A stretch of DNA of 53,062 nt, taken from Tubulanus polymorphus. Taxonomy: Eukaryota; Animalia; Nemertea. The position numbers and the translations under genes were made by a program. The first letter of the stretch is position 1. The number at the start of each line of letters is the position of its first letter. The notes beneath the pieces are model-generated. The model was not told the origin of the DNA and did no database searches. It was given only the letters and a program-made list of their open reading frames with translations. The stretch is from the NCBI RefSeq assembly GCF_964204645.1, contig NW_027437480.1:1-53062 (forward strand), given 5' to 3'. Below are positions 4,578 through 53,062 of this stretch, one piece after another.

Positions 4578-4689
4578 TAGAAATATATGTCATCATCAAT
4601 TTTGATTCGCGCGACTTCGCAAGGTCGTCAATATCGGGGATTCCCTAAAAATGCGGGAATACCCCTCAGCTTAAAAGAAAGCGAACGAA

Positions 4690-22983: not shown

Positions 22984-23001
22984 GGGTTAGGGTTAGGGTT
23001 A
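22984..23001 (+). repeat. Telomeric repeat seed (GGGTTA)3
   Basis: Perfect TTAGGG-type repeats between the satellite and the retroelement. G-rich strand is +, implying that any chromosome end lies to the right. Confidence 0.85.
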
Positions 23002-23224
23002 GGTTTAGAGATAGAGGTTAGGGGACCAAACCGAAGGTTTGGAGACCCCACTAGTGCACGGGCAGCGGGTTATCCCTGTAAAAAAGTAGTGAGAGTTAAT
23101 TGTTGTAGTGAGGCGGTCTACGGGACGTTCATGCCTCGGGGCGTGTTCGTGTCGAGTCGTCGTATCCAGTCTTGTTCGGCTGCTTCGCGGATCGGTCTCG
23201 TGGAGCCTGGTAGGTGTTGGAGAC
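22997..23224 (-). mobile_element. 5'-truncated 228-bp 3'-terminal fragment of the PLE
   Basis: Same sequence as 23228-23455 (offset 231); includes the last ORF2 codons and stop. Confidence 0.95.
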
Positions 23225-23348
23225 TAGGGTTAGGTTTAGAGATAGAGGTTAGGGGACCAAACCGAAGGTTTGGAGACCCCACTAGTGCACGGGCAGCGGG
23301 TTATCCCTGTAAAAAAGTAGTGAGAGTTAATTGTTGTAGTGAGGCGGT

Positions 23349-25814
23349 CTACGGGACGTTCATGCCTCGGGGCGTGTTCGTGTCGAGTCGTCGTATCCAG
23401 TCTTGTTCGGCTGCTTCGCGGATCGGTCTCGTGGAGCCTGGTAGGTGTTGGAGACCGTACACCCGAAAGTGTTCGCGGGTGTGGTCGACTTGGTTGAAGT
23501 GGTCCGAGACTGGAGTCGAATTCTTCGTTCTGATGCGTGAGACGTGATGAGTGACGCGTTCTCGTAGAGACATTCCGGTTTGGCCGACGTACAGCATGTT
23601 GCACTTGGTGCATTCGATGCAGTATACAATTTCACGGGTCGCGCAATTAATTGTGCTGCGGATCGCGTGCATTTTGTTGTGGCTGCGGCAAACGGTTGTT
23701 TCTCGGACGAGTGGACACGTACGACATCTCGGTGTTCTGCATTTCTCGGTGCCTCGACGTCGGGTTGACGGAGTTCTTTGAGTAGACCTGGAAATAGAAG
23801 AATTGGAAACAACGGAAGTATTTCTGTTACGATGCGGTGAAGAGGGGACTCGGGGTGGGGGTGGCTCCGTGGGTTTGAGCTGCGACGAAGTTAGGAGATC
23901 TTTGAGACTCTTGTGCTTGGTGTAGGCGGTGACCGTGGTTACCTCGTCAGACCGGCCGGTGGCCGTAGCCAGTTCCGTAAATCTGGTTCGGATGTTACGG
24001 GCTAGGGTTCGGTTGGCTTCGGAGTGAGGTAAGATAAGCGGTAAACGCTTTTTCGGCGGTTCGTCGGCCCGTTGTTGTTCTCGTAGATCTCGTTCGGCGT
24101 GGTGCCGTAGAGCTTGGCTTTTGATGTGTCGCAGTTCGCGGTCTTTGTAGCCACGACCTCTGAGTACTTTAAGGACGGTTCCGGACGCTGCGTGTAAGTC
24201 CGAATCGTTATTGCAGATGCGCCGGAACCGGAGAATTTGACTTTTAACTATACCGGAAAATGTGTGTTTAGGGTGAAACGAGGATCGATGTAGTAATTGA
24301 TGCGAATCGGTTGGTTTGAAGTAGACTTTGGTGTCTACTGTGCCACTTGTCTCGAATCGCGGGCCTTTGAAAGTGGTTACGTCCAGGAAGTTGACGCTGG
24401 TGTCGCTGATTTCGAACTTGAGTTTGATGGATCGGCTCACTGTTTGTAGGACGTCGATGAATTGCATCAACGTTTCGCGGCCGTGTTCCCAAACTATGTA
24501 GATGTCGTCGATGAACCGAGCGTATAGCGATGGTTGGAGTTCGCTTCTGGACAGACCTTCTTTTTCCCATTCGGCTACAAAGATATTGGCATAAGAAGGA
24601 GCAAAACGCTTACCCATTGCGGTACCTTTTACCTGTAAATATGTGTTATCGTTAAAGTTAAAGTCATTTTTCTTCAGGCTGATTTCGAGTAGTTTCAGCA
24701 GCTCGGCATCCGGGCGTCCCGGGTTTGGGTTATCTCGGAGAGCTTGTCGGATGCTGGCGATACCCTCTTCGTGGGGGATGTTGGTGTAGAGCGAATCGAT
24801 GTCCATGGTGACGAGTAACGCATCGGCGCTAAATTGTTTACCGGCCAAAATATCTAGAAAGTGGTTGGTATCTTTGACGTACGACGGGTGACCGCGGGCG
24901 ATCGGCTGCAAATAGTAGTCGATCCATTCCGAAATTTCGTAGGTTTCGGAGCCGCAGTCGGAGACGATCGGTCTCCCCGGCGGTACGCGATCGGGTACCG
25001 TCCACTTCTCGCGTTCTTTATGGATTTTGGGAAGCAGATAGAACTGCCTCTGTTTCGGATTATCGGGCGGTAATAGATATTCGGCGGTTTTTAGCGGGAT
25101 GATTTTTCGTCGAGCCATATTTTCGATGATTTCGCGAATTTCTTCCCCGGTCTGTTCGAAGATCGGTTGCTGCAGCGGCTGATAATACTCGAGATCGGCT
25201 AGTTGGCGCATGGCTTCGTGGACGTAGTCGTCGCGGTCCATGATAACCGTAGCGGAACCCTTATCGGCGGCTTTGATGACAATATTAGTGTTGTCACGCA
25301 GCTGCTGGAGGGCTTCGCGTTCCTGTTTAGTGAGGTTATCATTTACGCGACGCGTATCCCTGGTTTGTTGAGCCAATTCGTGCGCGTCGTTGCAGAACCC
25401 GGCGATTACTGGTTCTATTTCATCCGGAGCCCAACTGCTGGGCAGACGGAAACGCGGAGCCTCGCGGTCCGGTTTGTCTCGGAAGTGATGGTCGAGTTTC
25501 ACTAGCCGGTTGAATCGGCACACTCCCTTGGTGCGCTCGGTCGCGGCGGCATCAGAACCGATTTTTGGAGTCGGGCAATAAGTGAGGCCCTTTCGGAGTA
25601 GCTGATGTTGCGCCGGACTTAGGCGGAGTGAACGTGTGAGGTTGACCACCGGGCTCCCGAGAGCGGTGACCGGATCGCGTCGCGCTTGGTTTGGTGCCGG
25701 TTCTTCGTGTTCGTCGGACCTGGAAATGGAAGAAATCAGAGAAGCATTGGTTAATTCCGGTTGATTTAACTCACCAATAGTGGACCCGTTGGTCTCACTA
25801 ATACTTAGTTTAAA
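23349..25814 (-). CDS. PLE ORF2: reverse transcriptase + Cys-rich linker + GIY-YIG endonuclease (unit 1); frame open from the slippery site
   Basis: ADKG, FYLLPKIHK, PGRPIVS, LVTMDIDSLYTNIP, GTAMG...APSYANIF, RFIDD, FLDV, linker CRTPRCRTC, IVYCIECTKCNMLYVGQT...R...HF...H...E...GMN. The track start (25649) is GTG; the frame has no stop back to 25814. Confidence 0.95.
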   Translation of the reverse strand, partial: FKLSISETNGSTIGELNQPELTNASLISSISRSDEHEEPAPNQARRDPVTALGSPVVNLTRSLRLSPAQHQLLRKGLTYCPTPKIGSDAAATERTKGVCRFNRLVKLDHHFRDKPDREAPRFRLPSSWAPDEIEPVIAGFCNDAHELAQQTRDTRRVNDNLTKQEREALQQLRDNTNIVIKAADKGSATVIMDRDDYVHEAMRQLADLEYYQPLQQPIFEQTGEEIREIIENMARRKIIPLKTAEYLLPPDNPKQRQFYLLPKIHKEREKWTVPDRVPPGRPIVSDCGSETYEISEWIDYYLQPIARGHPSYVKDTNHFLDILAGKQFSADALLVTMDIDSLYTNIPHEEGIASIRQALRDNPNPGRPDAELLKLLEISLKKNDFNFNDNTYLQVKGTAMGKRFAPSYANIFVAEWEKEGLSRSELQPSLYARFIDDIYIVWEHGRETLMQFIDVLQTVSRSIKLKFEISDTSVNFLDVTTFKGPRFETSGTVDTKVYFKPTDSHQLLHRSSFHPKHTFSGIVKSQILRFRRICNNDSDLHAASGTVLKVLRGRGYKDRELRHIKSQALRHHAERDLREQQRADEPPKKRLPLILPHSEANRTLARNIRTRFTELATATGRSDEVTTVTAYTKHKSLKDLLTSSQLKPTEPPPPRVPSSPHRNRNTSVVSNSSISRSTQRTPSTRRRGTEKCRTPRCRTCPLVRETTVCRSHNKMHAIRSTINCATREIVYCIECTKCNMLYVGQTGMSLRERVTHHVSRIRTKNSTPVSDHFNQVDHTREHFRVYGLQHLPGSTRPIREAAEQDWIRRLDTNTPRGMNVP
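25778..25814 (-). other. Candidate -1 programmed ribosomal frameshift signal (heptamer also at 32153-32159, 38495-38501, 44837-44843, 51179-51185)
   Basis: T_TTA_AAC (25814-25808) in the correct ORF1 phase, immediately followed by the ORF1 TAA; 7-nt spacer, then hairpin TAGTG-A-GACC-AACG-GGTC-CACTA. The -1 frame is ORF2. Confidence 0.8.
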
Positions 25815-27316
25815 CCACTGAGCCAGTGGTCCAGCAGGGTGTTAGCTGTACCACGGTTCCAGTGGATCCCGTCTCCAACAACTCTGAAGCGTCGATCATC
25901 GATGGGTGGTATCGCGGTGACGTCGTCGTTATTCTCGAGGAATTCGTTGAACTTCCGGGCGAACTGCTGGTGTTCGCGGGTCGTGTTGAGTTGAACGAAG
26001 TGGACGAACGAGTGCTGATACTTCTTGACTGCGGCGTTGATCAGGCGCTGTGTGGTCTTCCTGGCGGTCGCTTCGAAGTTGTTGTCGCGGTTGTTGATTC
26101 CGACGCTGATGATCACCGTATCCGGGCGATCTCGGCGCTCCGGTACAGCATCGATCAGGTCGGCGAGATGAGCTATCTTGCAGCCGGGGAAGCTCTCGAT
26201 CTGGACGTCATCCGGACGGCGGCTTAATGTGATGTTACTCAGATTTGAGTCACCAATCACCAGAATGGGTCGCCGGGTTGGTGGCAGACTCCAATCCTGT
26301 TTCTTCCGACCCGTATTCGGATGACGGCGAACTTCCTGGGGCGCCATCGGTCTCGGTGTTGGCGTCGGACTTCGCGCTGGCAGTAGGCGCCCTGGTGACC
26401 TGTAATGAGACGGAGAGCTGGAAAGAGAAGAAGAGAGAGACGGCGTCGGACTGCTGGTTGGTGCGGTCGGCGTTCTCTGCGGCGGCGGCGGCGGCGTCGG
26501 GTTTCGAGGCGGCGGCGTCGGACTTCTCGGTGGCGTCGGACTTCTTGGTGGCGGCGGCGGCGTCGGCATCGGATTTCTCGGTGGTGGCGCCATTCTGGGT
26601 GGTGGCGTCCTGGTGACATCCGCGTAGCTTCTCGGTGACCTGGAATCAGAAAAAGAAGGAGGCGCTGTGGGCGCGGCGGGCGCGGCTGCGGTTGGTGCAG
26701 GCGTCCTCGGCGTCGCGGGCTTTCGAATCTTCCGGCTCGGTCTCGGCGGCGGACGAATCTTCGGCTCCGTGGGTGCCTCCTGGTGGTGTGACCTGAAATG
26801 AGAAGGGGAAGAAGGTGGGTTAGATAGGACATTTCTGAGTTTGTCAGACAGAGCCTGACCGCGGAATTTCGACCGCAAATCCAGCGCGATGTTGAAAAGC
26901 CGGATCGTTCCGGGGCTCAGACGGGAGCCGAAATTCCTCCGGGCCCATGTCAGGGCGACATCCTGTGCTGATAGACAGTCCGGCAGAGGATCACCCATTA
27001 GCTCAACAAATGTGGCAGCGTAATGGATGGTCAGCTCTTTCGAAACTGTCTCCATCCAGACGTCCGCGGCAGCGTGCAGCTGCACCGTTACTGCTTCGGT
27101 GCAAGCCGCCGGCCGCAGGAACATCTTCAGATGGTCCTTCTTCCTCCGAATCGCTTTCGGACCAGAGCTCAACTGGGCAAGGTGGTGCGCCACTTGAAGA
27201 GCTCTATAATAGGTTTTCGGCGACATCCCGGGTTGCTGGTGTCGCTCAGGGCGTCCTCCGCCCTTGCTGGTCTTCTCAGCTGGTGGTCGTTTCTTCTTTC
27301 GAGTAGATCGCTCCAT
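25805..27316 (-). CDS. PLE ORF1: basic N-terminus, helical domain, Pro/Ser/Thr-rich linker, SGNH/GDSL hydrolase (unit 1)
   Basis: SGNH blocks VIGDSNL, SFPG, ISVGINN, DGIHW; NLS-like RKKKRP. ATG 27316 is preferred because ATG 27367 lies at the predicted transcription start and upstream of the ribozyme. Confidence 0.88.
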   Translation of the reverse strand: MERSTRKKKRPPAEKTSKGGGRPERHQQPGMSPKTYYRALQVAHHLAQLSSGPKAIRRKKDHLKMFLRPAACTEAVTVQLHAAADVWMETVSKELTIHYAATFVELMGDPLPDCLSAQDVALTWARRNFGSRLSPGTIRLFNIALDLRSKFRGQALSDKLRNVLSNPPSSPSHFRSHHQEAPTEPKIRPPPRPSRKIRKPATPRTPAPTAAAPAAPTAPPSFSDSRSPRSYADVTRTPPPRMAPPPRNPMPTPPPPPRSPTPPRSPTPPPRNPTPPPPPQRTPTAPTSSPTPSLSSSLSSSPSHYRSPGRLLPARSPTPTPRPMAPQEVRRHPNTGRKKQDWSLPPTRRPILVIGDSNLSNITLSRRPDDVQIESFPGCKIAHLADLIDAVPERRDRPDTVIISVGINNRDNNFEATARKTTQRLINAAVKKYQHSFVHFVQLNTTREHQQFARKFNEFLENNDDVTAIPPIDDRRFRVVGDGIHWNRGTANTLLDHWLSGLN

Positions 27317-27354
27317 TGACAGATATTTCGGCGAGGTTGCCTTCGTCAGTGTCA
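27317..27354 (-). ncRNA. Minimal type I hammerhead ribozyme (unit 1)
   Basis: UGACA-CUGACGA-A-GGC-AACCUC-GCC-GAAA-UA-UC^UGUCA: 5-bp stem I, complete core, 3-bp stem II, palindromic AUAU in place of stem III. Confidence 0.8.
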
Positions 27355-27364
27355 GTGCAGGAAT

Positions 27365-27398
27365 CATGCTGAACTAGGATTAGACACGGGTTTTTATA
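27365..27398 (-). promoter_or_regulatory. TATA box (TATAAAAA 27398-27391) with Inr-like TTCAGC about 28 nt downstream; TATA repeated at 33733-33740, 40075-40082, 46417-46424, 52759-52766
   Basis: Canonical TATA-Inr spacing directly upstream of the ribozyme and ORF1. Confidence 0.65.
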
Positions 27399-28739
27399 CA
27401 CGCAGCGCGCAACAAGTGAACAGTATTCGAGTTAGAAGTTAAGTGACCATATGAGACCTTGTGATCTAGACTAATTGTACTTCTGTGATCAAGCTAATAG
27501 ACAAACTAGGGGTCTGACTAATTATGCCTTTGATCCAGAGTGACTAGAAAACAGCACTAATTATAGCCCTTGATCTAGCTGTTGAATAGTTTGCTTTGAT
27601 GTATAGTTCTAAAGATCTAAAGAGCGGCGTGTCTAATATAGAATTGAAAAGTTTATTTCGATATAACCTAATAAATACTCAAAGTGTTTTCTATAAAGAG
27701 AAATCTAGAATATGTATTATTAATATACGTGAACCGGAATGTTCGAAATATGTCCGAGTTCAGTTTCAAAATTGCTTAATTCCTAATTAGTTTAGACGCG
27801 TTAATTAGCGGTGCGCGGCCGAGGCGTATTCCGATATACGCGTGTTTACTAGATAGTCGTAAATGGTGAAATCCGGTTCTTAGTTAATCGAGTTTTCTCC
27901 GTATTCTAAAGCTTTTAAGAGCGGATTTTGAAATATCTACGCGGTATTCTACCGAAAATTGGATGAATTAGACAGCGCGGCGTCGGCGATTTAGTAGGAA
28001 GTTATAACCCGTAAGATCTAAATTACTGAGTGAGCGCGGGTGGTTAATTAGCCCTAATTATGGGTGACGAGTTTTGATAGAAATGTCTTACTAATACGTC
28101 TGTTTTAATTCTACGTTCTTAAATATAATTCTATTAGATAAACTACGCTTATTTAGAGTTATTAGGATCGAGTAAAGCTATGTGAACTTAAACATGTCAC
28201 AAATATATTCAGACCGGAGCGCGGGTATTCAGTCAATCGGTTTAAGCTTGCGTAGTTTGAGTGGTTCAAAAACACTATGATCTCTTCTTTAATCCGAAGG
28301 TTGAAATATATACGTGATATAAAACTCTTTTTGAATCGGGAATATTGGGCTGTGTTCTTTGAAAAAAACTGATGAGTTTGAAGGCGTCGTAACTGCGATT
28401 TTGTATAGAATTGAGTCGGATAATTAGTCAAGAGGCGCAGGTGGCCGATCGGTCACTAATTATGAGTGACTTGTAAACAGTGATTGATGTCCGTGGACTA
28501 TTATTTATCCTATAAACTTCTTATACTTCTACAACCTATAGTGCGGTTTTTGAATATAGCTACTAATACTTTTGAGCGATCTCATTAGAATTGTTATCCG
28601 AAAATAAACTGTCTGTTTTAGAGAAATTTGAAACTTGACACCCGGATCTATATAGAGTATGTTCCAAGAGTTGGCGCGTAGATACGATAATAGTTAATTA
28701 GGACGTAGCGGGTTAGGTCCCCGACCGAACGTAATAGAT

Positions 28740-29296
28740 TAAACGGAGGTTAATTAGGGTGCCGCGGGTTCGAGTCCCGACCAGGCGCCGTTTAGTAATT
28801 GAATAGTTCTATTCTAAATGTTTTTTACCTATTCTGGATTCCTTTTAATTCTGAATCTTTGACGGATACAATAGTACTTTTCAGATGTTTCTACGATATA
28901 ATCTTAGTGCCGACGCATATTTTCAAAATAAATAAGAGCGGTGGACTGGTTACCGGTATCTAACGCGGGGCACCGGCAACCCGTCAGTACTAGCGGTTAA
29001 TTTCGGAGCGGCGGGTACGGTTCCCGAGTATTCTCCGGAGCTTAATTCGGGTGCCGCGGGTTCGAGTCCCGATCAGGCGCGCCGTTTTAGTAATTGAGTA
29101 TATTCTTACCTATTCTAGATTCCCTTTCTTTCTAAATTTATAATAGATTAATTAATACTTTTCGGGTGTTTCTATGATATAATCTCAGTGCTGACGCATA
29201 TTTTCGAAATAGATAATAGCGGTGGACTGGTTACCGGTTTCTATCGTCCTGGGACAGGCAACCAGTCTGTACTAGCGGTTAGGGTTCGGTTCCCGA
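28740..29296. repeat. Diverged ~292-bp internal duplication in the PLE spacer, each copy with GCGGGTTCGAGTCCCGA
   Basis: B-box cores at 28767 and 29059; flanking blocks align by eye. Confidence 0.85.
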
Positions 29297-29693
29297 TATC
29301 GCGCTTTTGTTTATTTTTCTAACTGTTTCTGATATTTGATCTGTCTTCTTACTTACTGAATTTCGATTGAGTTTTCAAAGTAAAGCAGAGAGAACTAATT
29401 AAAAGATAAAAGGTTAATGATTCCTGTGGAGCTTGTGATCTTGGAGTTTGTTTTGTACTCTGTCTCTGAGCGGGTTTCTGCTTCAGGCGACGGAGGATGA
29501 TTCTGCAAATAGATTGATGATTAATAATTAATCAGTTAAGATAATTTACGAGGGAAACCTGGCACGGGCTAAGGTTAGGTTTAGAGATAGAGGTTAGGGG
29601 ACCAAACCGAAGGTTTGGAGACCCCACTAGTGCACGGGCAGCGGGTTATCCCTGTAAAAAAGTAGTGAGAGTTAATTGTTGTAGTGAGGCGGT

Positions 29694-32159
29694 CTACGGG
29701 ACGTTCATGCCTCGGGGCGTGTTCGTGTCGAGTCGTCGTATCCAGTCTTGTTCGGCTGCTTCGCGGATCGGTCTCGTGGAGCCTGGTAGGTGTTGGAGAC
29801 CGTACACCCGAAAGTGTTCGCGGGTGTGGTCGACTTGGTTGAAGTGGTCCGAGACTGGAGTCGAATTCTTCGTTCTGATGCGTGAGACGTGATGAGTGAC
29901 GCGTTCTCGTAGAGACATTCCGGTTTGGCCGACGTACAGCATGTTGCACTTGGTGCATTCGATGCAGTATACAATTTCACGGGTCGCGCAATTAATTGTG
30001 CTGCGGATCGCGTGCATTTTGTTGTGGCTGCGGCAAACGGTTGTTTCTCGGACGAGTGGACACGTACGACATCTCGGTGTTCTGCATTTCTCGGTGCCTC
30101 GACGTCGGGTTGACGGAGTTCTTTGAGTAGACCTGGAAATAGAAGAATTGGAAACAACGGAAGTATTTCTGTTACGATGCGGTGAAGAGGGGACTCGGGG
30201 AGGGGGTGGCTCCGTGGGTTTGAGCTGCGACGAAGTTAGGAGATCTTTGAGACTCTTGTGCTTGGTGTAGGCGGTGACCGTGGTTACCTCGTCCGACCGG
30301 CCGGTGGCCGTAGCCAGTTCCGTAAATCTGGTTCGGATGTTACGGGCTAGGGTTCGGTTGGCTTCGGAGTGAGGTAAGATAAGCGGTAAACGCTTTTTCG
30401 GCGGTTCGTCGGCCCGTTGTTGTTCTCGTAGATCTCGTTCGGCGTGGTGCCGTAGAGCTTGACTTTTGATGTGTCGCAGTTCGCGGTCTTTGTAGCCACG
30501 ACCTCTGAGTACTTTAAGGACGGTTCCGGACGCTGCGTGTAAGTCCGAATCGTTATTGCAGATGCGCCGGAACCGGAGAATTTGACTTTTAACTATACCG
30601 GAAAATGTGTGTTTAGGGTGAAACGAGGATCGATGTAGTAATTGATGCGAATCGGTTGGTTTGAAGTAGACTTTGGTGTCTACTGTGCCACTTGTCTCGA
30701 ATCGCGGGCCTTTGAAAGTGGTTACGTCCAGGAAGTTGACGCTGGTGTCGCTGATTTCGAACTTGAGTTTGATGGATCGGCTCACTGTTTGTAGGACGTC
30801 GATGAATTGCATCAACGTTTCGCGGCCGTGTTCCCAAACTATGTAGATGTCGTCGATGAACCGAGCGTATAGCGATGGTTGGAGTTCGCTTCTGGACAGA
30901 CCTTCTTTTTCCCATTCGGCTACAAAGATATTGGCATAAGAAGGAGCAAAACGCTTACCCATTGCGGTACCTTTTACCTGTAAATATGTGTTTTCGTTAA
31001 AGTTAAAGTCATTTTTCTTCAGGCTGATTTCGAGTAGTTTCAGCAGCTCGGCATCCGGGCGTCCCGGGTTCGGGTTATCTCGGAGAGCTTGTCGGATGCT
31101 GGCGATACCCTCTTCGTGGGGGATGTTGGTGTAGAGCGAATCGATGTCCATGGTGACGAGTAACGCATCGGCGCTAAATTGTTTACCGGCCAAAATATCT
31201 AGAAAGTGGTTGGTATCTTTGACGTACGACGGGTGACCGCGGGCGATCGGCTGCAAATAGTAGTCGATCCATTCCGAAATTTCGTAGGTTTCGGAGCCGC
31301 AGTCGGAGACGATCGGTCTCCCCGGCGGTACGCGATCGGGTACCGTCCACTTCTCGCGTTCTTTATGGATTTTGGGAAGCAGATAGAACTGCCTCTGTTT
31401 CGGATTATCGGGCGGTAATAGATATTCGGCGGTTTTTAGCGGGATGATTTTTCGTCGAGCCATATTTTCGATGATTTCGCGAATTTCTTCCCCGGTCTGT
31501 TCGAAGATCGGTTGCTGCAGCGGCTGATAATACTCGAGATCGGCTAGTTGGCGCATGGCTTCGAGGACGTAGTCGTCGCGGTCCATGATAACCGTAGCGG
31601 AACCCTTATCGGCGGCTTTGATGACAATATTAGTGTTGTCACGCAGCTGCTGGAGGGCTTCGCGTTCCTGTTTAGTGAGGTTATCATTTACGCGACGCGT
31701 ATCCCTGGTTTGTTGAGCCAATTCGTGCGCGTCGTTGCAGAACCCGGCGATTACTGGTTCTATTTCATCCGGAGCCCAACTGCTGGGCAGACGGAAACGC
31801 GGAGCCTCGCGGTCCGGTTTGTCTCGGAAGTGATGGTCGAGTTTCACTAGCCGGTTGAATCGGCACACTCCCTTGGTGCGCTCGGTCGCGGCGGCATCAG
31901 AACCGATTTTTGGAGTCGGGCAATAAGTGAGGCCCTTTCGGAGTAGCTGATGTTGCGCCGGACTTAGGCGGAGTGAACGTGTGAGGTTGACCACCGGGCT
32001 CCCGAGAGCGGTGACCGGATCGCGTCGCGCTTGGTTTGGTGCCGGTTCTTCGTGTTCGTCGGACCTGGAAACGGAAGAAATCAGAGAAGCATTGGTTAAT
32101 TCCGGTTGATTTAACTCACCAATAGTGGACCCGTTGGTCTCACTAATACTTAGTTTAAA
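29694..32159 (-). CDS. PLE ORF2 RT-GIY-YIG (unit 2)
   Basis: Intact; same motifs as unit 1. Confidence 0.95.
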   Translation of the reverse strand, partial: FKLSISETNGSTIGELNQPELTNASLISSVSRSDEHEEPAPNQARRDPVTALGSPVVNLTRSLRLSPAQHQLLRKGLTYCPTPKIGSDAAATERTKGVCRFNRLVKLDHHFRDKPDREAPRFRLPSSWAPDEIEPVIAGFCNDAHELAQQTRDTRRVNDNLTKQEREALQQLRDNTNIVIKAADKGSATVIMDRDDYVLEAMRQLADLEYYQPLQQPIFEQTGEEIREIIENMARRKIIPLKTAEYLLPPDNPKQRQFYLLPKIHKEREKWTVPDRVPPGRPIVSDCGSETYEISEWIDYYLQPIARGHPSYVKDTNHFLDILAGKQFSADALLVTMDIDSLYTNIPHEEGIASIRQALRDNPNPGRPDAELLKLLEISLKKNDFNFNENTYLQVKGTAMGKRFAPSYANIFVAEWEKEGLSRSELQPSLYARFIDDIYIVWEHGRETLMQFIDVLQTVSRSIKLKFEISDTSVNFLDVTTFKGPRFETSGTVDTKVYFKPTDSHQLLHRSSFHPKHTFSGIVKSQILRFRRICNNDSDLHAASGTVLKVLRGRGYKDRELRHIKSQALRHHAERDLREQQRADEPPKKRLPLILPHSEANRTLARNIRTRFTELATATGRSDEVTTVTAYTKHKSLKDLLTSSQLKPTEPPPPRVPSSPHRNRNTSVVSNSSISRSTQRTPSTRRRGTEKCRTPRCRTCPLVRETTVCRSHNKMHAIRSTINCATREIVYCIECTKCNMLYVGQTGMSLRERVTHHVSRIRTKNSTPVSDHFNQVDHTREHFRVYGLQHLPGSTRPIREAAEQDWIRRLDTNTPRGMNVP

Positions 32160-33658: not shown

Positions 33659-33696
33659 TGACAGATATTTCGGCGAGGTTGCCTTCGTCAGTGTCA
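33659..33696 (-). ncRNA. Minimal hammerhead ribozyme (unit 2)
   Basis: Same sequence as 27317-27354. Confidence 0.8.
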
Positions 33697-40000: not shown

Positions 40001-40038
40001 TGACAGATATTTCGGCGAGGTTGCCTTCGTCAGTGTCA
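40001..40038 (-). ncRNA. Minimal hammerhead ribozyme (unit 3)
   Basis: Same sequence as unit 1. Confidence 0.8.
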
Positions 40039-44843: not shown

Positions 44844-46342
44844 CCACTGAGCCAGTGGTCCAGCAGGGTGTTAGCTGTACCACGGTTCCAGTGGATCCCG
44901 TCTCCAACAACTCTGAAGCGTCGATCATCGATGGGTGGTATCGCGGTGACGTCGTCGTTATTCTCGAGGAATTCGTTGAACTTCCGGGCGAACTGCTGGT
45001 GTTCGCGGGTCGTGTTGAGTTGAACGAAGTGGACGAACGAGTGCTGATACTTCTTGACTGCGGCGTTGATCAGGCGCTGTGTGGTCTTCCTGGCGGTCGC
45101 TTCGAAGTTGTTGTCGCGGTTGTTGATTCCGACGCTGATGATCACCGTATCCGGGCGATCTCGGCGCTCCGGTACAGCATCGATCAGGTCGGCGAGATGA
45201 GCTATCTTGCAGCCGGGGAAGCTCTCGATCTGGACGTCATCCGGACGGCGGCTTGATGTGATGTTACTCAGATTTGAGTCACCAATCACCAGAATGGGTC
45301 GCCGGGTTGGTGGCAGACTCCAATCCTGTTTCTTCCGACCCGTATTCGGATGACGGCGAACTTCCTGGGGCGCCATCGGTCTCGGTGTTGGCGTCGGACT
45401 TCGCGCTGGCAGTAGGCGCCCTGGTGACCTGTAATGAGACGGAGAGCTGGAAAGAGAAGAAGAGAGAGACGGCGTCGGACTGCTGGTTGGTGCGGTCGGC
45501 GTTCTCTGCGGCGGCGGCGGCGTCGGGTTTCGAGGCGGCGGCGTCGGACTTCTCGGTGGCGTCGGACTTCTTGGTGGCGGCGGCGGCGTCGGCATCGGAC
45601 TTCTCGGTGGTGGCGCCATTCTGGTTGGTGGCGTCCTGGTGACATCCGCGTAGCTTCTCGGTGACCTGGAATCAGAAAAAGAAGGAGGCGCTGTGGGCGC
45701 GGCGGGCGCGGCTGCGGTTGGTGCAGGCGTCCTCGGCGTCGCGGGCTTTCGAATCTTCCGGCTCGGTCTCGGCGGCGGACGAATCTTCGGCTCCGTGGGT
45801 GCCTCCTGGTGGTGTGACCTGAAATGAGAAGGGGAAGAAGGTGGGTTAGATAGGACATTTCTGAGTTTGTCAGACAGAGCCTGACCGCGGAATTTCGACC
45901 GCAAATCCAGCGCGATGTTGAAAAGCCGGATCGTTCCGGGGCTCAGACGGGAGCCGAAATTCCTCCGGGCCCATGTCAGGGCGACATCCTGTGCTGATAG
46001 ACAGTCCGGCAGAGGATCACCCATTAGCTCAACAAATGTGGCAGCGTAATGGATGGTCAGCTCTTTCGAAACTGTCTCCATCCAGACGTCCGCGGCAGCG
46101 TGCAGCTGCACCGTTACTGCTTCGGTGCAAGCCGCCGGCCGCAGGAACATCTTCAGATGGTCCTTCTTCCTCCGAATCGCTTTCGGACCAGAGCTCAACT
46201 GGGCAAGGTGGTGCGCCACTTGAAGAGCTCTATAATAGGTTTTCGGCGACATCCCGGGTTGCTGGTGTCGCTCAGGGCGTCCTCCGCCCTTGCTGGTCTT
46301 CTCAGCTGGTGGTCGTTTCTTCTTTCGAGTAGATCGCTCCAT
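44834..46342 (-). CDS. PLE ORF1 with SGNH hydrolase (unit 4)
   Basis: Intact. Confidence 0.88.
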   Translation of the reverse strand: MERSTRKKKRPPAEKTSKGGGRPERHQQPGMSPKTYYRALQVAHHLAQLSSGPKAIRRKKDHLKMFLRPAACTEAVTVQLHAAADVWMETVSKELTIHYAATFVELMGDPLPDCLSAQDVALTWARRNFGSRLSPGTIRLFNIALDLRSKFRGQALSDKLRNVLSNPPSSPSHFRSHHQEAPTEPKIRPPPRPSRKIRKPATPRTPAPTAAAPAAPTAPPSFSDSRSPRSYADVTRTPPTRMAPPPRSPMPTPPPPPRSPTPPRSPTPPPRNPTPPPPQRTPTAPTSSPTPSLSSSLSSSPSHYRSPGRLLPARSPTPTPRPMAPQEVRRHPNTGRKKQDWSLPPTRRPILVIGDSNLSNITSSRRPDDVQIESFPGCKIAHLADLIDAVPERRDRPDTVIISVGINNRDNNFEATARKTTQRLINAAVKKYQHSFVHFVQLNTTREHQQFARKFNEFLENNDDVTAIPPIDDRRFRVVGDGIHWNRGTANTLLDHWLSGLN

Positions 46343-46380
46343 TGACAGATATTTCGGCGAGGTTGCCTTCGTCAGTGTCA
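46343..46380 (-). ncRNA. Minimal hammerhead ribozyme (unit 4)
   Basis: Same sequence as unit 1. Confidence 0.8.
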
Positions 46381-48719
46381 GTGCAGGAATCATGCTGAAC
46401 TAGGATTAGACACGGGTTTTTATACACGCAGCGCGCAACAAGTGAACAGTATTCGAGTTAGAAGTTAAGTGACCATATGAGACCTTGTGATCTAGACTAA
46501 TTGTACTTCTGTGATCAAGCTAATAGACAAACTAGGGGTCTGACTAATTATGCCTTTGATCCAGAGTGACTAGAAAACAGCACTAATTATAGCCCTTGAT
46601 CTAGCTGTTGAATAGTTTGCTTTGATGTATAGTTCTAAAGATCTAAAGAGCGGCGTGTCTAATATAGAATTGAAAAGTTTATTTCGATATAACCTAATAA
46701 ATACTCAAAGTGTTTTCTATAAAGAGAAATCTAGAATATGTATTATTAATATACGTGAACCGGAATGTTCGAAATATGTCCGAGTTCAGTTTCAAAATTG
46801 CTTAATTCCTAATTAGTTTAGACGCGTTAATTAGCGGTGCGCGGCCGAGGCGTATTCCGATATACGCGTGTTTACTAGATAGTCGTAAATGGTGAAATCC
46901 GGTTCTTAGTTAATCGAGTTTTCTCCGTATTCTAAAGCTTTTAAGAGCGGATTTTGAAATATCTACGCGGTATTCTACCGAAAATTGGATGAATTAGACA
47001 GCGCGGCGTCGGCGATTTAGTAGGAAGTTATAACCCGTAAGATCTAAATTACTGAGTGAGCGCGGGTGGTTAATTAGCCCTAATTATGGGTGACGAGTTT
47101 TGATAGAAATGTCTTACTAATACGTCTGTTTTAATTCTACGTTCTTAAATATAATTCTATTAGATAAACTACGCTTATTTAGAGTTATTAGGATCGAGTA
47201 AAGCTATGTGAACTTAAACATGTCACAAATATATTCAGACCGGAGCGCGGGTATTCAGTCAATCGGTTTAAGCTTGCGTAGTTTGAGTGGTTCAAAAACA
47301 CTATGATCTCTTCTTTAATCCGAAGGTTGAAATATATACGTGATATAAAACTCTTTTTGAATCGGGAATATTGGGCTGTGTTCTTTGAAAAAAACTGATG
47401 AGTTTGAAGGCGTCGTAACTGCGATTTTGTATAGAATTGAGTCGGATAATTAGTCAAGAGGCGCAGGTGGCCGATCGGTCACTAATTATGAGTGACTTGT
47501 AAACAGTGATTGATGTCCGTGGACTATTATTTATCCTATAAACTTCTTATACTTCTACAACCTATAGTGCGGTTTTTGAATATAGCTACTAATACTTTTG
47601 AGCGATCTCATTAGAATTGTTATCCGAAAATAAACTGTCTGTTTTAGAGAAATTTGAAACTTGACACCCGGATCTATATAGAGTATGTTCCAAGAGTTGG
47701 CGCGTAGATACGATAATAGTTAATTAGGACGTAGCGGGTTAGGTCCCCGACCGAACGTAATAGATTAAACGGAGGTTAATTAGGGTGCCGCGGGTTCGAG
47801 TCCCGACCAGGCGCCGTTTAGTAATTGAATAGTTCTATTCTAAATGTTTTTTACCTATTCTGGATTCCTTTTAATTCTGAATCTTTGACGGATACAATAG
47901 TACTTTTCAGATGTTTCTACGATATAATCTTAGTGCCGACGCATATTTTCAAAATAAATAAGAGCGGTGGACTGGTTACCGGTATCTAACGCGGGGCACC
48001 GGCAACCCGTCAGTACTAGCGGTTAATTTCGGAGCGGCGGGTACGGTTCCCGAGTATTCTCCGGAGCTTAATTCGGGTGCCGCGGGTTCGAGTCCCGATC
48101 AGGCGCGCCGTTTTAGTAATTGAGTATATTCTTACCTATTCTAGATTCCCTTTCTTTCTAAATTTATAATAGATTAATTAATACTTTTCGGGTGTTTCTA
48201 TGATATAATCTCAGTGCTGACGCATATTTTCGAAATAGATAATAGCGGTGGACTGGTTACCGGTTTCTATCGTCCTGGGACAGGCAACCAGTCTGTACTA
48301 GCGGTTAGGGTTCGGTTCCCGATATCGCGCTTTTGTTTATTTTTCTAACTGTTTCTGATATTTGATCTGTCTTCTTACTTACTGAATTTCGATTGAGTTT
48401 TCAAAGTAAAGCAGAGAGAACTAATTAAAAGATAAAAGGTTAATGATTCCTGTGGAGCTTGTGATCTTGGAGTTTGTTTTGTACTCTGTCTCTGAGCGGG
48501 TTTCTGCTTCAGGCGACGGAGGATGATTCTGCAAATAGATTGATGATTAATAATTAATCAGTTAAGATAATTTACGAGGGAAACCTGGCACGGGCTAAGG
48601 TTAGGTTTAGAGATAGAGGTTAGGGGACCAAACCGAAGGTTTGGAGACCCCACTAGTGCACGGGCAGCGGGTTATCCCTGTAAAAAAGTAGTGAGAGTTA
48701 ATTGTTGTAGTGAGGCGGT

Positions 48720-51185
48720 CTACGGGACGTTCATGCCTCGGGGCGTGTTCGTGTCGAGTCGTCGTATCCAGTCTTGTTCGGCTGCTTCGCGGATCGGTCT
48801 CGTGGAGCCTGGTAGGTGTTGGAGACCGTACACCCGAAAGTGTTCGCGGGTGTGGTCGACTTGGTTGAAGTGGTCCGAGACTGGAGTCGAATTCTTCGTT
48901 CTGATGCGTGAGACGTGATGAGTGACGCGTTCTCGTAGAGACATTCCGGTTTGGCCGACGTACAGCATGTTGCACTTGGTGCATTCGATGCAGTATACAA
49001 TTTCACGGGTCGCGCAATTAATTGTGCTGCGGATCGCGTGCATTTTGTTGTGGCTGCGGCAAACGGTTGTTTCTCGGACGAGTGGACACGTACGACATCT
49101 CGGTGTTCTGCATTTCTCGGTGCCTCGACGTCGGGTTGACGGAGTTCTTTGAGTAGACCTGGAAATAGAAGAATTGGAAACAACGGAAGTATTTCTGTTA
49201 CGATGCGGTGAAGAGGGGACTCGGGGAGGGGGTGGCTCCGTGGGTTTGAGCTGCGACGAAGTTAGGAGATCTTTGAGACTCTTGTGCTTGGTGTAGGCGG
49301 TGACCGTGGTTACCTCGTCCGACCGGCCGGTGGCCGTAGCCAGTTCCGTAAATCTGGTTCGGATGTTACGGGCTAGGGTTCGGTTGGCTTCGGAGTGAGG
49401 TAAGATAAGCGGTAAACGCTTTTTCGGCGGTTCGTCGGCCCGTTGTTGTTCTCGTAGATCTCGTTCGGCGTGGTGCCGTAGAGCTTGACTTTTGATGTGT
49501 CGCAGTTCGCGGTCTTTGTAGCCACGACCTCTGAGTACTTTAAGGACGGTTCCGGACGCTGCGTGTAAGTCCGAATCGTTATTGCAGATGCGCCGGAACC
49601 GGAGAATTTGACTTTTAACTATACCGGAAAATGTGTGTTTAGGGTGAAACGAGGATCGATGTAGTAATTGATGCGAATCGGTTGGTTTGAAGTAGACTTT
49701 GGTGTCTACTGTGCCACTTGTCTCGAATCGCGGGCCTTTGAAAGTGGTTACGTCCAGGAAGTTGACGCTGGTGTCGCTGATTTCGAACTTGAGTTTGATG
49801 GATCGGCTCACTGTTTGTAGGACGTCGATGAATTGCATCAACGTTTCGCGGCCGTGTTCCCAAACTATGTAGATGTCGTCGATGAACCGAGCGTATAGCG
49901 ATGGTTGGAGTTCGCTTCTGGACAGACCTTCTTTTTCCCATTCGGCTACAAAGATATTGGCATAAGAAGGAGCAAAACGCTTACCCATTGCGGTACCTTT
50001 TACCTGTAAATATGTGTTTTCGTTAAAGTTAAAGTCATTTTTCTTCAGGCTGATTTCGAGTAGTTTCAGCAGCTCGGCATCCGGGCGTCCCGGGTTCGGG
50101 TTATCTCGGAGAGCTTGTCGGATGCTGGCGATACCCTCTTCGTGGGGGATGTTGGTGTAGAGCGAATCGATGTCCATGGTGACGAGTAACGCATCGGCGC
50201 TAAATTGTTTACCGGCCAAAATATCTAGAAAGTGGTTGGTATCTTTGACGTACGACGGGTGACCGCGGGCGATCGGCTGCAAATAGTAGTCGATCCATTC
50301 CGAAATTTCGTAGGTTTCGGAGCCGCAGTCGGAGACGATCGGTCTCCCCGGCGGTACGCGATCGGGTACCGTCCACTTCTCGCGTTCTTTATGGATTTTG
50401 GGAAGCAGATAGAACTGCCTCTGTTTCGGATTATCGGGCGGTAATAGATATTCGGCGGTTTTTAGCGGGATGATTTTTCGTCGAGCCATATTTTCGATGA
50501 TTTCGCGAATTTCTTCCCCGGTCTGTTCGAAGATCGGTTGCTGCAGCGGCTGATAATACTCGAGATCGGCTAGTTGGCGCATGGCTTCGTGGACGTAGTC
50601 GTCGCGGTCCATGATAACCGTAGCGGAACCCTTATCGGCGGCTTTGATGACAATATTAGTGTTGTCACGCAGCTGCTGGAGGGCTTCGCGTTCCTGTTTA
50701 GTGAGGTTATCATTTACGCGACGCGTATCCCTGGTTTGTTGAGCCAATTCGTGCGCGTCGTTGCAGAACCCGGCGATTACTGGTTCTATTTCATCCGGAG
50801 CCCAACTGCTGGGCAGACGGAAACGCGGAGCCTCGCGGTCCGGTTTGTCTCGGAAGTGATGGTCGAGTTTCACTAGCCGGTTGAATCGGCACACTCCCTT
50901 GGTGCGCTCGGTCGCGGCGGCATCAGAACCGATTTTTGGAGTCGGGCAATAAGTGAGGCCCTTTCGGAGTAGCTGATGTTGCGCCGGACTTAGGCGGAGT
51001 GAACGTGTGAGGTTGACCACCGGGCTCCCGAGAGCGGTGACCGGATCGCGTCGCGCTTGGTTTGGTGCCGGTTCTTCGTGTTCGTCGGACCTGGAAATGG
51101 AAGAAATCAGAGAAGCATTGGTTAATTCCGGTTGATTTAACTCACCAATAGTGGACCCGTTGGTCTCACTAATACTTAGTTTAAA
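48720..51185 (-). CDS. PLE ORF2 RT-GIY-YIG (unit 5)
   Basis: Intact. Confidence 0.95.
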   Translation of the reverse strand, partial: FKLSISETNGSTIGELNQPELTNASLISSISRSDEHEEPAPNQARRDPVTALGSPVVNLTRSLRLSPAQHQLLRKGLTYCPTPKIGSDAAATERTKGVCRFNRLVKLDHHFRDKPDREAPRFRLPSSWAPDEIEPVIAGFCNDAHELAQQTRDTRRVNDNLTKQEREALQQLRDNTNIVIKAADKGSATVIMDRDDYVHEAMRQLADLEYYQPLQQPIFEQTGEEIREIIENMARRKIIPLKTAEYLLPPDNPKQRQFYLLPKIHKEREKWTVPDRVPPGRPIVSDCGSETYEISEWIDYYLQPIARGHPSYVKDTNHFLDILAGKQFSADALLVTMDIDSLYTNIPHEEGIASIRQALRDNPNPGRPDAELLKLLEISLKKNDFNFNENTYLQVKGTAMGKRFAPSYANIFVAEWEKEGLSRSELQPSLYARFIDDIYIVWEHGRETLMQFIDVLQTVSRSIKLKFEISDTSVNFLDVTTFKGPRFETSGTVDTKVYFKPTDSHQLLHRSSFHPKHTFSGIVKSQILRFRRICNNDSDLHAASGTVLKVLRGRGYKDRELRHIKSQALRHHAERDLREQQRADEPPKKRLPLILPHSEANRTLARNIRTRFTELATATGRSDEVTTVTAYTKHKSLKDLLTSSQLKPTEPPPPRVPSSPHRNRNTSVVSNSSISRSTQRTPSTRRRGTEKCRTPRCRTCPLVRETTVCRSHNKMHAIRSTINCATREIVYCIECTKCNMLYVGQTGMSLRERVTHHVSRIRTKNSTPVSDHFNQVDHTREHFRVYGLQHLPGSTRPIREAAEQDWIRRLDTNTPRGMNVP

Positions 51186-52684
51186 CCACTGAGCCAGTGG
51201 TCCAGCAGGGTGTTAGCTGTACCACGGTTCCAGTGGATCCCGTCTCCAACAACTCTGAAGCGTCGATCATCGATGGGTGGTATCGCGGTGACGTCGTCGT
51301 GAATCTCGAGGAATTCGTTGAACTTCCGGGCGAACTGCTGGTGTTCGCGGGTCGTGTTGAGTTGAACGAAGTGGACGAACGAGTGCTGATACTTCTTGAC
51401 TGCGGCGTTGATCAGGCGCTGTGTGGTCTTCTTGGCGGTCGCTTCGAAGTTGTTGTCGCGGTTGTTGATTCCGACGCTGATGATCACCGTATCCGGGCGA
51501 TCTCGGCGCTCCGGTACAGCATCGATCAGGTCGGCGAGATGAGCTATCTTGCAGCCGGGGAAGCTCTCGATCTGGACGTCATCCGGACGGCGGCTTGATG
51601 TGATGTTACTCAGATTTGAGTCACCAATCACCAGAATGGGTCGCCGGGTTGGTGGCAGACTCCAATCCTGTTTCTTCCGACCAGTATTCGGATGACGGCG
51701 AACTTCCTGGGGCGCCATCGGTCTCGGTGTTGGCGTCGGACTTCGCGCTGGCAGTAGGCGCCCTGGTGACCTGTAATGAGACGGAGAGCTGGAAAGAGAA
51801 GAAGAGAGAGACGGCGTCGGACTGCTGGTTGGTGCGGTCGGCGTTCTCTGCGGCGGCGGCGGCGTCGGGTTTCGAGGCGGCGGCGTCGGACTTCTCGGTG
51901 GCGTCGGACTTCTTGGTGGCGGCGGCGGCGTCGGCATCGGACTTCTCGGTGGTGGCGCCATTCTGGTTGGTGGCGTCCTGGTGACATCCGCGTAGCTTCT
52001 CGGTGACCTGGAATCAGAAAAAGAAGGAGGCGCTGTGGGCGCGGCGGGCGCGGCTGCGGTTGGTGCAGGCGTCCTCGGCGTCGCGGGCTTTCGAATCTTC
52101 CGGCTCGGTCTCGGCGGCGGACGAATCTTCGGCTCCGTGGGTGCCTCCTGGTGGTGTGACCTGAAATGAGAAGGGGAAGAAGGTGGGTTAGATAGGACAT
52201 TTCTGAGTTTGTCAGACAGAGCCTGACCGCGGAATTTCGACCGCAAATCCAGCGCGATGTTGAAAAGCCGGATCGTTCCGGGGCTCAGACGGGAGCCGAA
52301 ATTCCTCCGGGCCCATGTCAGGGCGACATCCTGTGCTGATAGACAGTCCGGCAGAGGATCACCCATTAGCTCAACAAATGTGGCAGCGTAATGGATGGTC
52401 AGCTCTTTCGAAACTGTCTCCATCCAGACGTCCGCGGCAGCGTGCAGCCGCACCGTTACTGCTTCGGTGCAAGCCGCCGGCCGCAGGAACATCTTCAGAT
52501 GGTCCTTCTTCCTCCGAATCGCTTTCGGACCAGAGCTCAACTGGGCAAGGTGGTGCGCCACTTGAAGAGCTCTATAGTAATTTTTCGGCGACATCCCGGG
52601 TTGCTGGTGTCGCTCAGGGCGTCCTCCGCCCTTGCTGGTCTTCTCAGCTGGTGGTCGTTTCTTCTTTCGAGTAGATCGCTCCAT
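51176..52684 (-). CDS. PLE ORF1 with SGNH hydrolase (unit 5)
   Basis: Intact; variants KNYY, TVRLH, TAKKT, EIHDD. Confidence 0.88.
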   Translation of the reverse strand: MERSTRKKKRPPAEKTSKGGGRPERHQQPGMSPKNYYRALQVAHHLAQLSSGPKAIRRKKDHLKMFLRPAACTEAVTVRLHAAADVWMETVSKELTIHYAATFVELMGDPLPDCLSAQDVALTWARRNFGSRLSPGTIRLFNIALDLRSKFRGQALSDKLRNVLSNPPSSPSHFRSHHQEAPTEPKIRPPPRPSRKIRKPATPRTPAPTAAAPAAPTAPPSFSDSRSPRSYADVTRTPPTRMAPPPRSPMPTPPPPPRSPTPPRSPTPPPRNPTPPPPQRTPTAPTSSPTPSLSSSLSSSPSHYRSPGRLLPARSPTPTPRPMAPQEVRRHPNTGRKKQDWSLPPTRRPILVIGDSNLSNITSSRRPDDVQIESFPGCKIAHLADLIDAVPERRDRPDTVIISVGINNRDNNFEATAKKTTQRLINAAVKKYQHSFVHFVQLNTTREHQQFARKFNEFLEIHDDVTAIPPIDDRRFRVVGDGIHWNRGTANTLLDHWLSGLN

Positions 52685-52722
52685 TGACAGATATTTCGGC
52701 GAGGTTGCCTTCGTCAGTGTCA
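52685..52722 (-). ncRNA. Minimal hammerhead ribozyme (unit 5)
   Basis: Same sequence as unit 1. Confidence 0.8.
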
Positions 52723-53062
52723 GTGCAGGAATCATGCTGAACTAGGATTAGACACGGGTTTTTATACACGCAGCGCGCAACAAGTGAACAGTATTTGAGT
52801 TAGAAGTTAAGTGACCATATGAGACCTTGTGATCTAGACTAATTGTACTTCTGTGATCAAGCTAATAGACAAACTAGGGGTCTGACTAATTATGCCTTTG
52901 ATCCAGAGTGACTAGAAAACAGCACTAATTATGGCCCTTGATCTAGCTGTTGAATAGTTTGCTTTGATGTATAGTTCTAAAGATCTAAAGAACGGCGTGT
53001 CTAATATAGAATTGAAAAGTTTATTTCGATATAACCTGATAAATACTCAAAGTGTTTGCTAT

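Follow-up and report, generated by a model that had tools for sequence, protein, structure and literature searches.

The reverse transcriptases (RTs) of Penelope-like elements (PLEs) are the sister group of telomerase. PLEs have been described as two kinds, one with just one open reading frame (ORF), an endonuclease (EN) and a dispersed distribution, the other with two ORFs, without an EN and bound to telomeres (PMC6431247, PMC8557442); canonical EN-positive (EN+) elements are single-ORF and intrachromosomal, and the EN-deficient (EN-) ones are terminal (PMC8557442). It has also been noted that EN- families have their origin within EN+ clades and that Neptune is paraphyletic with telomeric Coprina (PMC8557442), so an EN+ intermediate is plausible. 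Here we describe a two-ORF PLE with an intact EN from Tubulanus polymorphus, which occupies more than half of the stretch analysed (the window), an entire 53,062-bp unplaced whole-genome shotgun (WGS) scaffold, CAXNRA020000051.1 (GCA_964204645.2), that belongs to none of the OZ chromosome records. In the reading that we consider probable, the window carries a head-to-tail chain of an autonomous, apparently active PLE, which is primed on telomeric DNA and prefers it, and whose EN also allows insertion within chromosomes.

A first-pass annotation of the window had described genes that give way to satellites, then to (GGGTTA)3 and to a chain of co-oriented, intact PLE units, and this layout was borne out (Table 1). 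The array holds 4.7 full-length copies that are 99.7-100% identical and arranged head-to-tail, with start-to-start spacings of 231, 6345, 6342, 6342 and 6342 bp in a direct-repeat scan and positional comparison. All five copies have an open ORF1 (519/520 aa) and an open ORF2 (listed with 766 aa, or 819 codons when counted from the slip site). As had been noted, every unit lies on the minus strand with its 3' end toward the genes and the G-strand outward, and the + strand of 23-53 kb is rich in G and T (GC skew +0.06 to +0.28, AT skew -0.03 to -0.22), which sets it apart from the left part. Relative to unit 2, unit 1 has 11 substitutions and a 3-bp indel and unit 5 has 15 substitutions, and since these sites do not overlap, at least three distinct units are real. 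Such private differences, together with the same multi-unit arrays in independent assemblies of relatives, make it very improbable that long-read mis-assembly inflated one or two PLE copies to 4.7 units, even if the complete identity of units 2-4 over 6342 bp and a small, unplaced scaffold that ends in repeat speak for such an error.

Table 1. Positions of the satellite, the telomeric seed, the PLE units and their parts, and the FIT-like gene in the window.
Feature	Position	Strand	Remarks
FIT-like gene	16331-17284	minus	
53-bp satellite array, ~21 units	21840-22983		Tandem Repeats Finder (TRF) and sequence; remainder of the monomer beyond the break point is CCTGCAATAAG...
Telomeric G-strand seed	22984-23003	+	perfect (GGGTTA)3 at 22984-23001 plus GG; runs straight into the element's 3' tract
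5'-truncated copy	23004-23224	minus	the element's 3'-terminal 221 nt (3' UTR and last ~35 ORF2 codons)
10-nt TAGGGTTAGG	23225-23234	+	perfect telomere repeat joining the truncated copy to unit 1
Unit 1	23225-29569	minus	full-length, 6345 bp
Unit 1, ORF2	23349-25808		
Unit 1, slip site	25808-25814		
Unit 1, ORF1	25805-27367		
Unit 1, hammerhead	27322-27349		
Unit 1, leader	27368-29569		
Unit 2	29570-35911	minus	full-length, 6342 bp, reference unit
RNA 3' end	29573-29618	minus	hairpin and telomere-like tract
ORF2 frame	29694-32153	minus	unit 2; 819 codons from the slip site
ORF1	32150-33709	minus	unit 2; 519 aa
-1 frameshift heptamer U_UUA_AAC (TTTAAAC)	32153-32159	minus	in ORF1 phase
Minimal type-I hammerhead motif	33664-33691	minus	present in every unit
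Leader	33710-35911	minus	unit 2; 2.2 kb, AT-rich, non-coding; full-length 5' end is GCCCGUGCCAGG
Unit 3	35912-42253	minus	100% identical to unit 2
Unit 4	42254-48595	minus	100% identical to unit 2
Unit 5	48596-53062	minus	partial (4467 bp), ends at the scaffold end within the leader

The RNA of the element ends in a form that could pair with telomeric DNA. Behind 125 nt of 3' UTR there is a 7-bp hairpin, CCAAACC-UUC-GGUUUGG (29602-29618), followed by a single-stranded telomere-like tract, CCCCUAACCUCUAUCUCUAAACCUAACC(U/C)UA (29573-29600). The tract reads CCCCUAACC...CUAAACCUAACC, which places short reverse-complement telomeric repeats at the 3' end, and its terminal CCUAACC complements GGTTAGG of the telomeric G-strand, in agreement with the telomere-complementary tract that had been predicted. 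Matches of the GGGTTAGGGTTA type number 15, against 0.36 expected by chance. The same layout of hairpin plus tract is found in three related elements (L004, L024 and L025), where the tract follows an ORF2 that is collinear with that of the window, and L013 has a telomere-like 3' tract as well. The fold that adjoins the tract is a plain 7-bp hairpin and the hammerhead lies 4.1 kb upstream; a hammerhead-like relic, CCUGAAGCAGAAAC, 75 nt downstream of the tract was rejected, as it has no helix II. The sequence (G)CCCGUGCC stands in the 3' UTR just before the hairpin (29630-29650, minus) and again at the extreme 5' end (29552-29569, minus), likewise at both ends in the 40%-identical L004 element (5270-5320), and may be a terminal redundancy for template switching.

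Four independent 3' junctions are available in the T. polymorphus family, given here on the cDNA (G-rich) strand. At the first, the final monomer of the 53-bp satellite is broken mid-unit after ...CAATTTGCA and followed by (GGGTTA)3, and the junction reads ...TTTGCA / GGGTTAGGGTTAGGGTTAGG / TTTAGAGATAGAGG..., the tail being (GGGTTA)3GG and the element starting with TTTAGAG. The second, behind the truncated copy, reads ...GGAGAC / TAGGGTTAGG / TTTAGAG..., the third, at the full-length 5' end, ...GGGC / TAAGGTTAGG / TTTAGAG... (present four times in the array, identical), and the fourth, at an interstitial copy, ...TTGGGTTTAGG / TTTAGAG... (flank also given as CATTATATTGGGTTTAGG). The copied part thus has one fixed initiation point at all four, and the tail that precedes it differs each time. 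The truncated copy is 100% identical to the matching part of unit 1 (TRF: 231-bp tandem, 2 copies, 100%), and position 23227 is G in unit 1 and A at the equivalent site in units 2-5. Perfect G3 repeats are found only at the first and second junctions, where no element template could supply them, since the element's own tract, CCUAACCUUA, has CCUUA and as a template would yield TAAGG, as at the third junction. For this reason the G3 repeats at the first two junctions would represent pre-existing telomerase-type DNA that annealed to CCUAACC as primer; these two junctions are best read as sites where telomerase-type repeats primed the copying, with the (GGGTTA)3GG seed as putative primer of the first reverse transcription. 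The third junction is identical at all four places, therefore the full-length units were not added singly with fresh priming; they arose together or through later amplification.

Pairs of an esterase ORF1 and an RT-EN ORF2 are found in many marine metagenome and sequencing-run assemblies, the two-ORF layout is shared with about ten related families, and head-to-tail full-length arrays are the rule among these relatives: a Tara scaffold carries two units with a period of 6256, a Logan contig closes on itself, and L026 is tandem. In assembly ERZ25069859, which is from another organism, a distantly related family with 46% identical ORF2 and intact EN residues forms chains that lie 0-50 kb from the ends of four long contigs (ctg22068, ctg22218, ctg21889 and ctg19501) and fills the 19-kb ctg8282. 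On every long contig the 5' ends face the contig end, a uniform polarity expected by chance with a probability of ~0.06 for four contigs, or 0.03 counting the window. This family provides 28 distinct 3' junctions, most of them with sense-oriented (CCCTAA)n tails of up to 246 nt that adjoin units cut at varied 5' positions; a precise full-length junction with a one-repeat tail also recurs, and there are exact tandems with a period of 8143. By analogy to TRAS/SART elements, the linker-EN could recognise and nick (TTAGGG)n and build chains inside telomeres or interstitial telomeric arrays, not on free ends. The CX2-5CxxC linker has been defined and tied to microsatellite targeting (PMC8557442), the orientation relative to (CCCTAA)n is uniform at the 28 junctions, and the EN is conserved in telomere-associated members of the family; yet the telomere tracts between elements are short (6-246 bp), the interstitial copy in T. 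polymorphus has no telomere-repeat target and the repeat before the window chain measures 20 nt, and we regard such an origin as unlikely. A bias toward (TA)n microsatellites fits neither T. polymorphus target (satellite plus (GGGTTA)3; unique AT-rich DNA), a weak test with n=2. In L013 a ~470-bp perfect-looking palindrome (18250-18720) lies at the inner end of the relative's telomeric chain, and after it degenerate (TTAGGG)n (19170-19230) runs in the opposite orientation.

ORF1 and ORF2 were searched as separate pieces. ORF2 encodes in this order a PLE RT (RVT_1 match with E=1e-7; AADKGSA and FIDD in the translation), a CX4CX2C linker and a GIY-YIG domain, and most of its 3299 homologues have the same precomputed RT/EN Pfam set. 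No ATG precedes codon ~190, and similarity to relatives begins upstream of this first possible start codon. The GIY-YIG domain scores 21.3 bits, slightly below the Pfam cut-off of 22.6, and has the CCHH pattern; GIY and YIG enclose two Cys, and R, H, H, E and N are present as well. In an alignment of seven sequences (A2), Y210, C214, C217, Y221, G223, R230, H236, H251, E282 and N298 are invariant, as are C171, C176 and C179 of the linker, C-RTPR-C-RT-C, and the fused Cys linker and GIY-YIG that had been recognised in the first pass are thereby confirmed. The label 'Neptune-type' that was attached to the element is taken from the linker motif only and should be understood as provisional. A sequence search of ORF2 against the PDB gave no match, and a search with its C-terminal 300 aa for short annotated T. 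polymorphus fragments returned nothing at an E cut-off of 1e-30. Two types of collinearity are seen in ORF2: a ~100-aa segment (AYxKxKNLxDLL...) lies either before the Cys linker and EN or after the EN, and the window, L004, P0002 and P0019 differ in this placement from L006, L007, L011 and L013, a domain permutation within the lineage.

In ORF1 an N-terminal region without family match is joined through a Pro-rich linker to an SGNH esterase at the C-terminus (aa ~340-519; GDSN, FPG, GINN, DGIH). With the single sequence the matches were weak: Lipase_GDSL_2 with 16.9 bits, below the Pfam cut-off, and the esterase of ZfL2-1 ORF1p (PDB 4C1B). As a search with the whole length of ORF1 was swamped by Pro-rich words and gave 6 matches, the esterase domain alone was used in the library search, which yielded 1050 representative relatives with the domain nearly always at the C-terminus. 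An alignment of 31 relatives shows invariant catalytic S34, G55, N85, D159 and H162, with blocks I, II, III and V present, and a profile of these 31 sequences matches 4C1B best in the PDB (E=1.5e-10), followed by PAF-AH Ib (E=1.5e-3). The assignment of ORF1 as an SGNH protein therefore holds.

The two ORFs are connected by a candidate -1 frameshift site. UUA AAC are the last two codons of ORF1, the preceding U completes the heptamer and TAA follows directly (32150-32152); ORF2 lies in the -1 frame, which continues open past the stop of ORF1. An in-phase heptamer at the end of ORF1 is also present in five other families (L003, L006, L007, L011 and L024) and not in L004 or L025, and most ORF1 homologues end in ..LN, which strengthens the frameshift signal proposed from the window. 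Craig et al. also show a frameshift-separated ORF1 in their scheme of PLE domains. A stretch of 55 nt after the slip site (32065-32119, minus) resembles an intron with GTGAGT, a polypyrimidine tract and a terminal CAG; it was rejected as it is probably no intron, because its removal would disrupt the frame of ORF2.

At the start of ORF1 there is a hammerhead motif, CUGACGA-A-GGC(loop)GCC-GAAA-UAU-C, with helix I UGACA/UGUCA, helix II GGC/GCC and all core positions present. Cleavage is predicted 5 nt ahead of Met18 in ORF1, and the minimum-energy structure is the hammerhead fold. The core is invariant in five families and has an extra A after A9, and the same variant is found 72-212 nt upstream of ORF1 in L003, L004, L024 and L025. 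Across the five families the sequences of helices I and II are unrelated yet still pair, the helix I duplexes range from -12.7 to -18.7 kcal/mol, and in helix II three pairs are changed on both sides, a covariation score reached by 2 of 500 shuffles. The motif was found in 1 of 1000 dinucleotide shuffles of the unit, with a descriptor that was written after the motif had been seen. Rfam gave no hammerhead, neither at the gathering threshold on the window nor at E<=10 on the UTRs, the whole unit and four relatives, and a strict descriptor also found nothing because of the extra A after A9; the motif emerged from a relaxed regular expression and comparison with relatives. By its core and covariation it qualifies as a PLE-type minimal type-I hammerhead with predicted self-cleavage; the hammerhead named in the first-pass annotation stands in this form, and the Rfam result remains negative. 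The leader upstream has a 260-bp internal repeat (80% identical) bearing antisense tRNA T-arm-like motifs. The motif GGGAyTCGAACCC lies on the sense strand of the leader at 28766-28778 and 29058-29070 and recurs every 6342 nt with the units; it is present in three independent two-ORF PLE families (the window; L011 at 468, 4961, 5776...; L020 at 7641 and 15784; L022 at 282 and 8361). No tRNA was called by ARAGORN despite these tRNA-like motifs.

One further copy was reached in T. polymorphus, on chromosome OZ123226.1, where NDUFV3 and a sugar-transporter gene flank it (12.14-12.17 Mb of 32.06 Mb). It is annotated in RefSeq as an 'uncharacterized protein' (L001 10215-12995; P0001, LOC141902624, 96% identical), carries an in-frame TGA insertion, shows a dN/dS of 0.39 against the array copy, which speaks for activity of the element, and has a 9-nt inverted repeat at its 5' junction. 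This copy opens a series of observations that weigh against the reading of the element as telomere-primed and active, or against its novelty. It is 5'-truncated (unit positions 3560-6336), 97.9% identical to the array element and shares the terminal tract, and its 3' junction shows no TTAGGG array; therefore the family is not confined to chromosome ends, and dispersal without TTAGGG, named in the first-pass annotation as speaking against a telomeric element, is seen in part, in this copy at 12.15 Mb. The right end of the scaffold (53062) falls within unit 5, and no terminal (TTAGGG)n is seen. A relative in ERZ26052378 forms an interstitial array without CCCTAA runs (period 5308, units 99.8-100% identical), whose first unit, at ~399 kb in a contig of 4.8 Mb, is 5'-truncated. 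In the window the period of 6342 bp is exact and the inter-unit junctions are identical and without a true telomere repeat, so most units need no chromosome end, and the 100% identity of units 2-4 could in part be an assembly or polishing effect. The hammerhead adjoins the telomere-like tract in Terminons (PMC6431247) and does not do so here. Downstream of the slip site the minimum free energy (MFE) of a stimulatory hairpin was no better than that of shuffles (z = -0.18; pseudoknot-free folding). An esterase ORF1 in Repbase PLEs was already mentioned by Schneider et al. 2013 (PMC3905857), so that the combination of two ORFs and SGNH has a precedent.

Several of these points would suit an ordinary EN insertion, in which the GIY-YIG domain made a nick, in the satellite or at a very small telomere-like site inside a chromosome, and a PLE tandem expanded by unequal crossing-over without any chromosome end. 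The EN is intact, a copy of the same family is interstitial, the ERZ26052378 tandem lies 400 kb inside its contig and starts like classical partial tandems, PLE tandem and pseudo-long-terminal-repeat (pLTR) structures are well established (PMC8557442), the period is exact and the junctions are identical, and long identical arrays break assemblies anywhere. Nevertheless, neither (GGGTTA)3 nor TAGGGTTAGG is encoded by the CCUUA-containing tract, and the truncated copy sits at the first-synthesised end of the chain, opposite to the classical partial tandem, where a truncated copy at the last-synthesised end precedes the full one (PMC8557442). The G-strand-outward polarity, the satellite-rich, subtelomere-like flank and the position of the ERZ25069859 relative at contig ends with uniform polarity also disagree with this explanation, which we hold to be doubtful.

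Whether the array is truly terminal is about evenly balanced. The chain's polarity, a seed of telomerase type where the satellite is broken, a flank that looks subtelomeric and the behaviour of the ERZ25069859 family all favour a terminal position; it is disfavoured by the scaffold being unplaced, by the interstitial copy and by a relative's interstitial array, and the array of the window could itself be interstitial, through an EN nick made in the satellite or in a short telomeric tract inside the chromosome. That the window reaches a real chromosome terminus, where a two-ORF EN+ PLE lineage widespread in marine invertebrates adds to telomerase-made ends by its telomere-complementary tail in alternation with telomerase, is a tentative proposal. 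Of the suggested convergence on Terminon-like telomere addition, the proximal junctions, read as priming, and the Athena-like chains of ERZ25069859 remain; most units are not independent end-additions, and no result here supports a function in telomere extension or maintenance.

For the telomere-primed, telomere-philic element that we favour, we infer the following course from the anatomy and the junctions. An SGNH-esterase ORF1p would be made, and -1 frameshifting at U_UUA_AAC would give an ORF1-ORF2 fusion with RT, Cys linker and GIY-YIG. A DNA 3' end would then anneal to the CCUAACC of the tract and prime reverse transcription, with ...GGGTTAGG-3' ends preferred and microhomology being enough; annealing-primed reverse transcription on G-strand-type 3' ends is the most likely mechanism. 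In the window, a DNA end within the 53-bp satellite would have borne three telomerase-made repeats and primed a first copy that aborted after 231 nt; the aborted end would have gained 1.6 more telomere repeats and primed a full-length copy. Further full-length units would have been joined precisely, 5' end to 3' tract, with units 2-4 as one amplification. Template switching and unequal crossing-over are candidate routes to the tandems, as is the copying of hammerhead-processed RNA in multimeric or circular form; the exact tandems might be due to a rolling-circle mode of reverse transcription, with unit-length or circular RNA from hammerhead processing as template. Units 2-4 are identical but units 1 and 5 are 0.2-0.3% diverged, which suggests more than one process. 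The EN would allow the same family to insert intrachromosomally, and the element would therefore be telomere-philic, not telomere-restricted.

The left 17 kb of the window contain ordinary metazoan genes, for a GPCR, a RecQ-type helicase, a Bud32/TP53RK-like kinase and FIT, and from ~17.9 kb onward several satellites replace the genes. A BLAST of the PLE unit against the left 23 kb revealed no older PLE fragments, so these satellites are not decayed PLE copies. A 72-bp satellite (3.9 copies, 19212-19490) holds in its unit a sense tRNA T-arm-like GGTTCGAATCCCGA and has no BLAST similarity to the PLE unit. Within the RecQ-like gene region, degenerate telomere-like repeats are found at 10784-10898 with the C-strand on + (TAACCCTGACCC/TAACCCTAACCC, GAG spacers), oriented opposite to the seed at 22984. 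A 27-bp in-frame minisatellite of 16.6 copies (6372-6819) codes for PPQTESTRV repeats within an ORF at 6089-7279, and there is a (TGC)64 microsatellite at 2341-2533.

An element that keeps its EN and has two ORFs, a telomere-complementary tail and telomere-seeded chains would blur the division of PLEs into two kinds, and would show how a genome-wide retrotransposon shifts toward chromosome ends, or back. If the terminus reading were true, it would be a living intermediate between intrachromosomal Neptune-like EN+ PLEs and the EN-deficient telomeric Athena and Coprina. With more than 1000 representative ORF1 esterase clusters and 3299 ORF2 matches in marine assemblies, this is testable in many chromosome-level genomes. 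In assemblies such arrays cause breaks, and RefSeq leaves them without annotation. The full texts gave no account of EN+ PLEs chained with interleaved telomere repeats, with subscription papers and Repbase mostly outside this scope, and the family may already be catalogued.

Compared with Neptune and Nematis, the window element has in common the PLE RT (DKG, YxDD), the CX2-5CxxC linker and the GIY-YIG with CCHH, as well as tandem head-to-tail order, 5' truncation, a minimal type-I hammerhead and intrachromosomal insertion. Neptune and Nematis are single-ORF elements, whereas the window element has two ORFs with a -1 frameshift and an SGNH esterase in ORF1, and unlike theirs its 3' tail complements telomeric repeats; neither of its two observed targets is a (TA)n microsatellite. 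With Athena, Terminons and Coprina it shares the two-ORF layout, the reverse-complement telomeric 3' tract and chains with 3' ends toward the centromere, and some Terminons also have a GDSL/SGNH esterase. Athena/Terminon-like 5'-truncated copies capped by short telomeric repeats are represented once in the window and more than 20 times in ERZ25069859. These elements are EN-deficient, whereas the RT ORF of the window element has an intact fused GIY-YIG; in contrast to Terminons its tract adjoins a plain hairpin, with the hammerhead 4 kb upstream at the ORF1 start. Further differences are the host repeat TTAGGG, the existence of an interstitial copy and the unplaced scaffold. For confinement to termini the window itself offers one truncated copy and a 10-nt seed, and the strong pattern is seen only in the 46%-identical ERZ25069859 relative.

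Among elements outside the PLEs, the CR1/L2-like LINE protein ZfL2-1 ORF1p (PDB 4C1B) has the same C-terminal SGNH esterase with intact S-G-N-D/H, but it belongs to a LINE, whereas the esterase of the window is attached to a PLE. TRAS1 and SART1 of Bombyx mori are, like the window element, EN-positive, autonomous and of fixed orientation in the telomeric repeats of a telomerase-positive animal; they are APE-type LINEs with poly(A), whereas the window element is a GIY-YIG PLE with a telomere-complementary tail, and the likeness is functional only. HeT-A, TART and TAHRE of Drosophila resemble the window chain in their head-to-tail, 5'-outward order and strand-biased composition, but are LINEs that replace telomerase, whereas the window element coexists with telomerase-type repeats.

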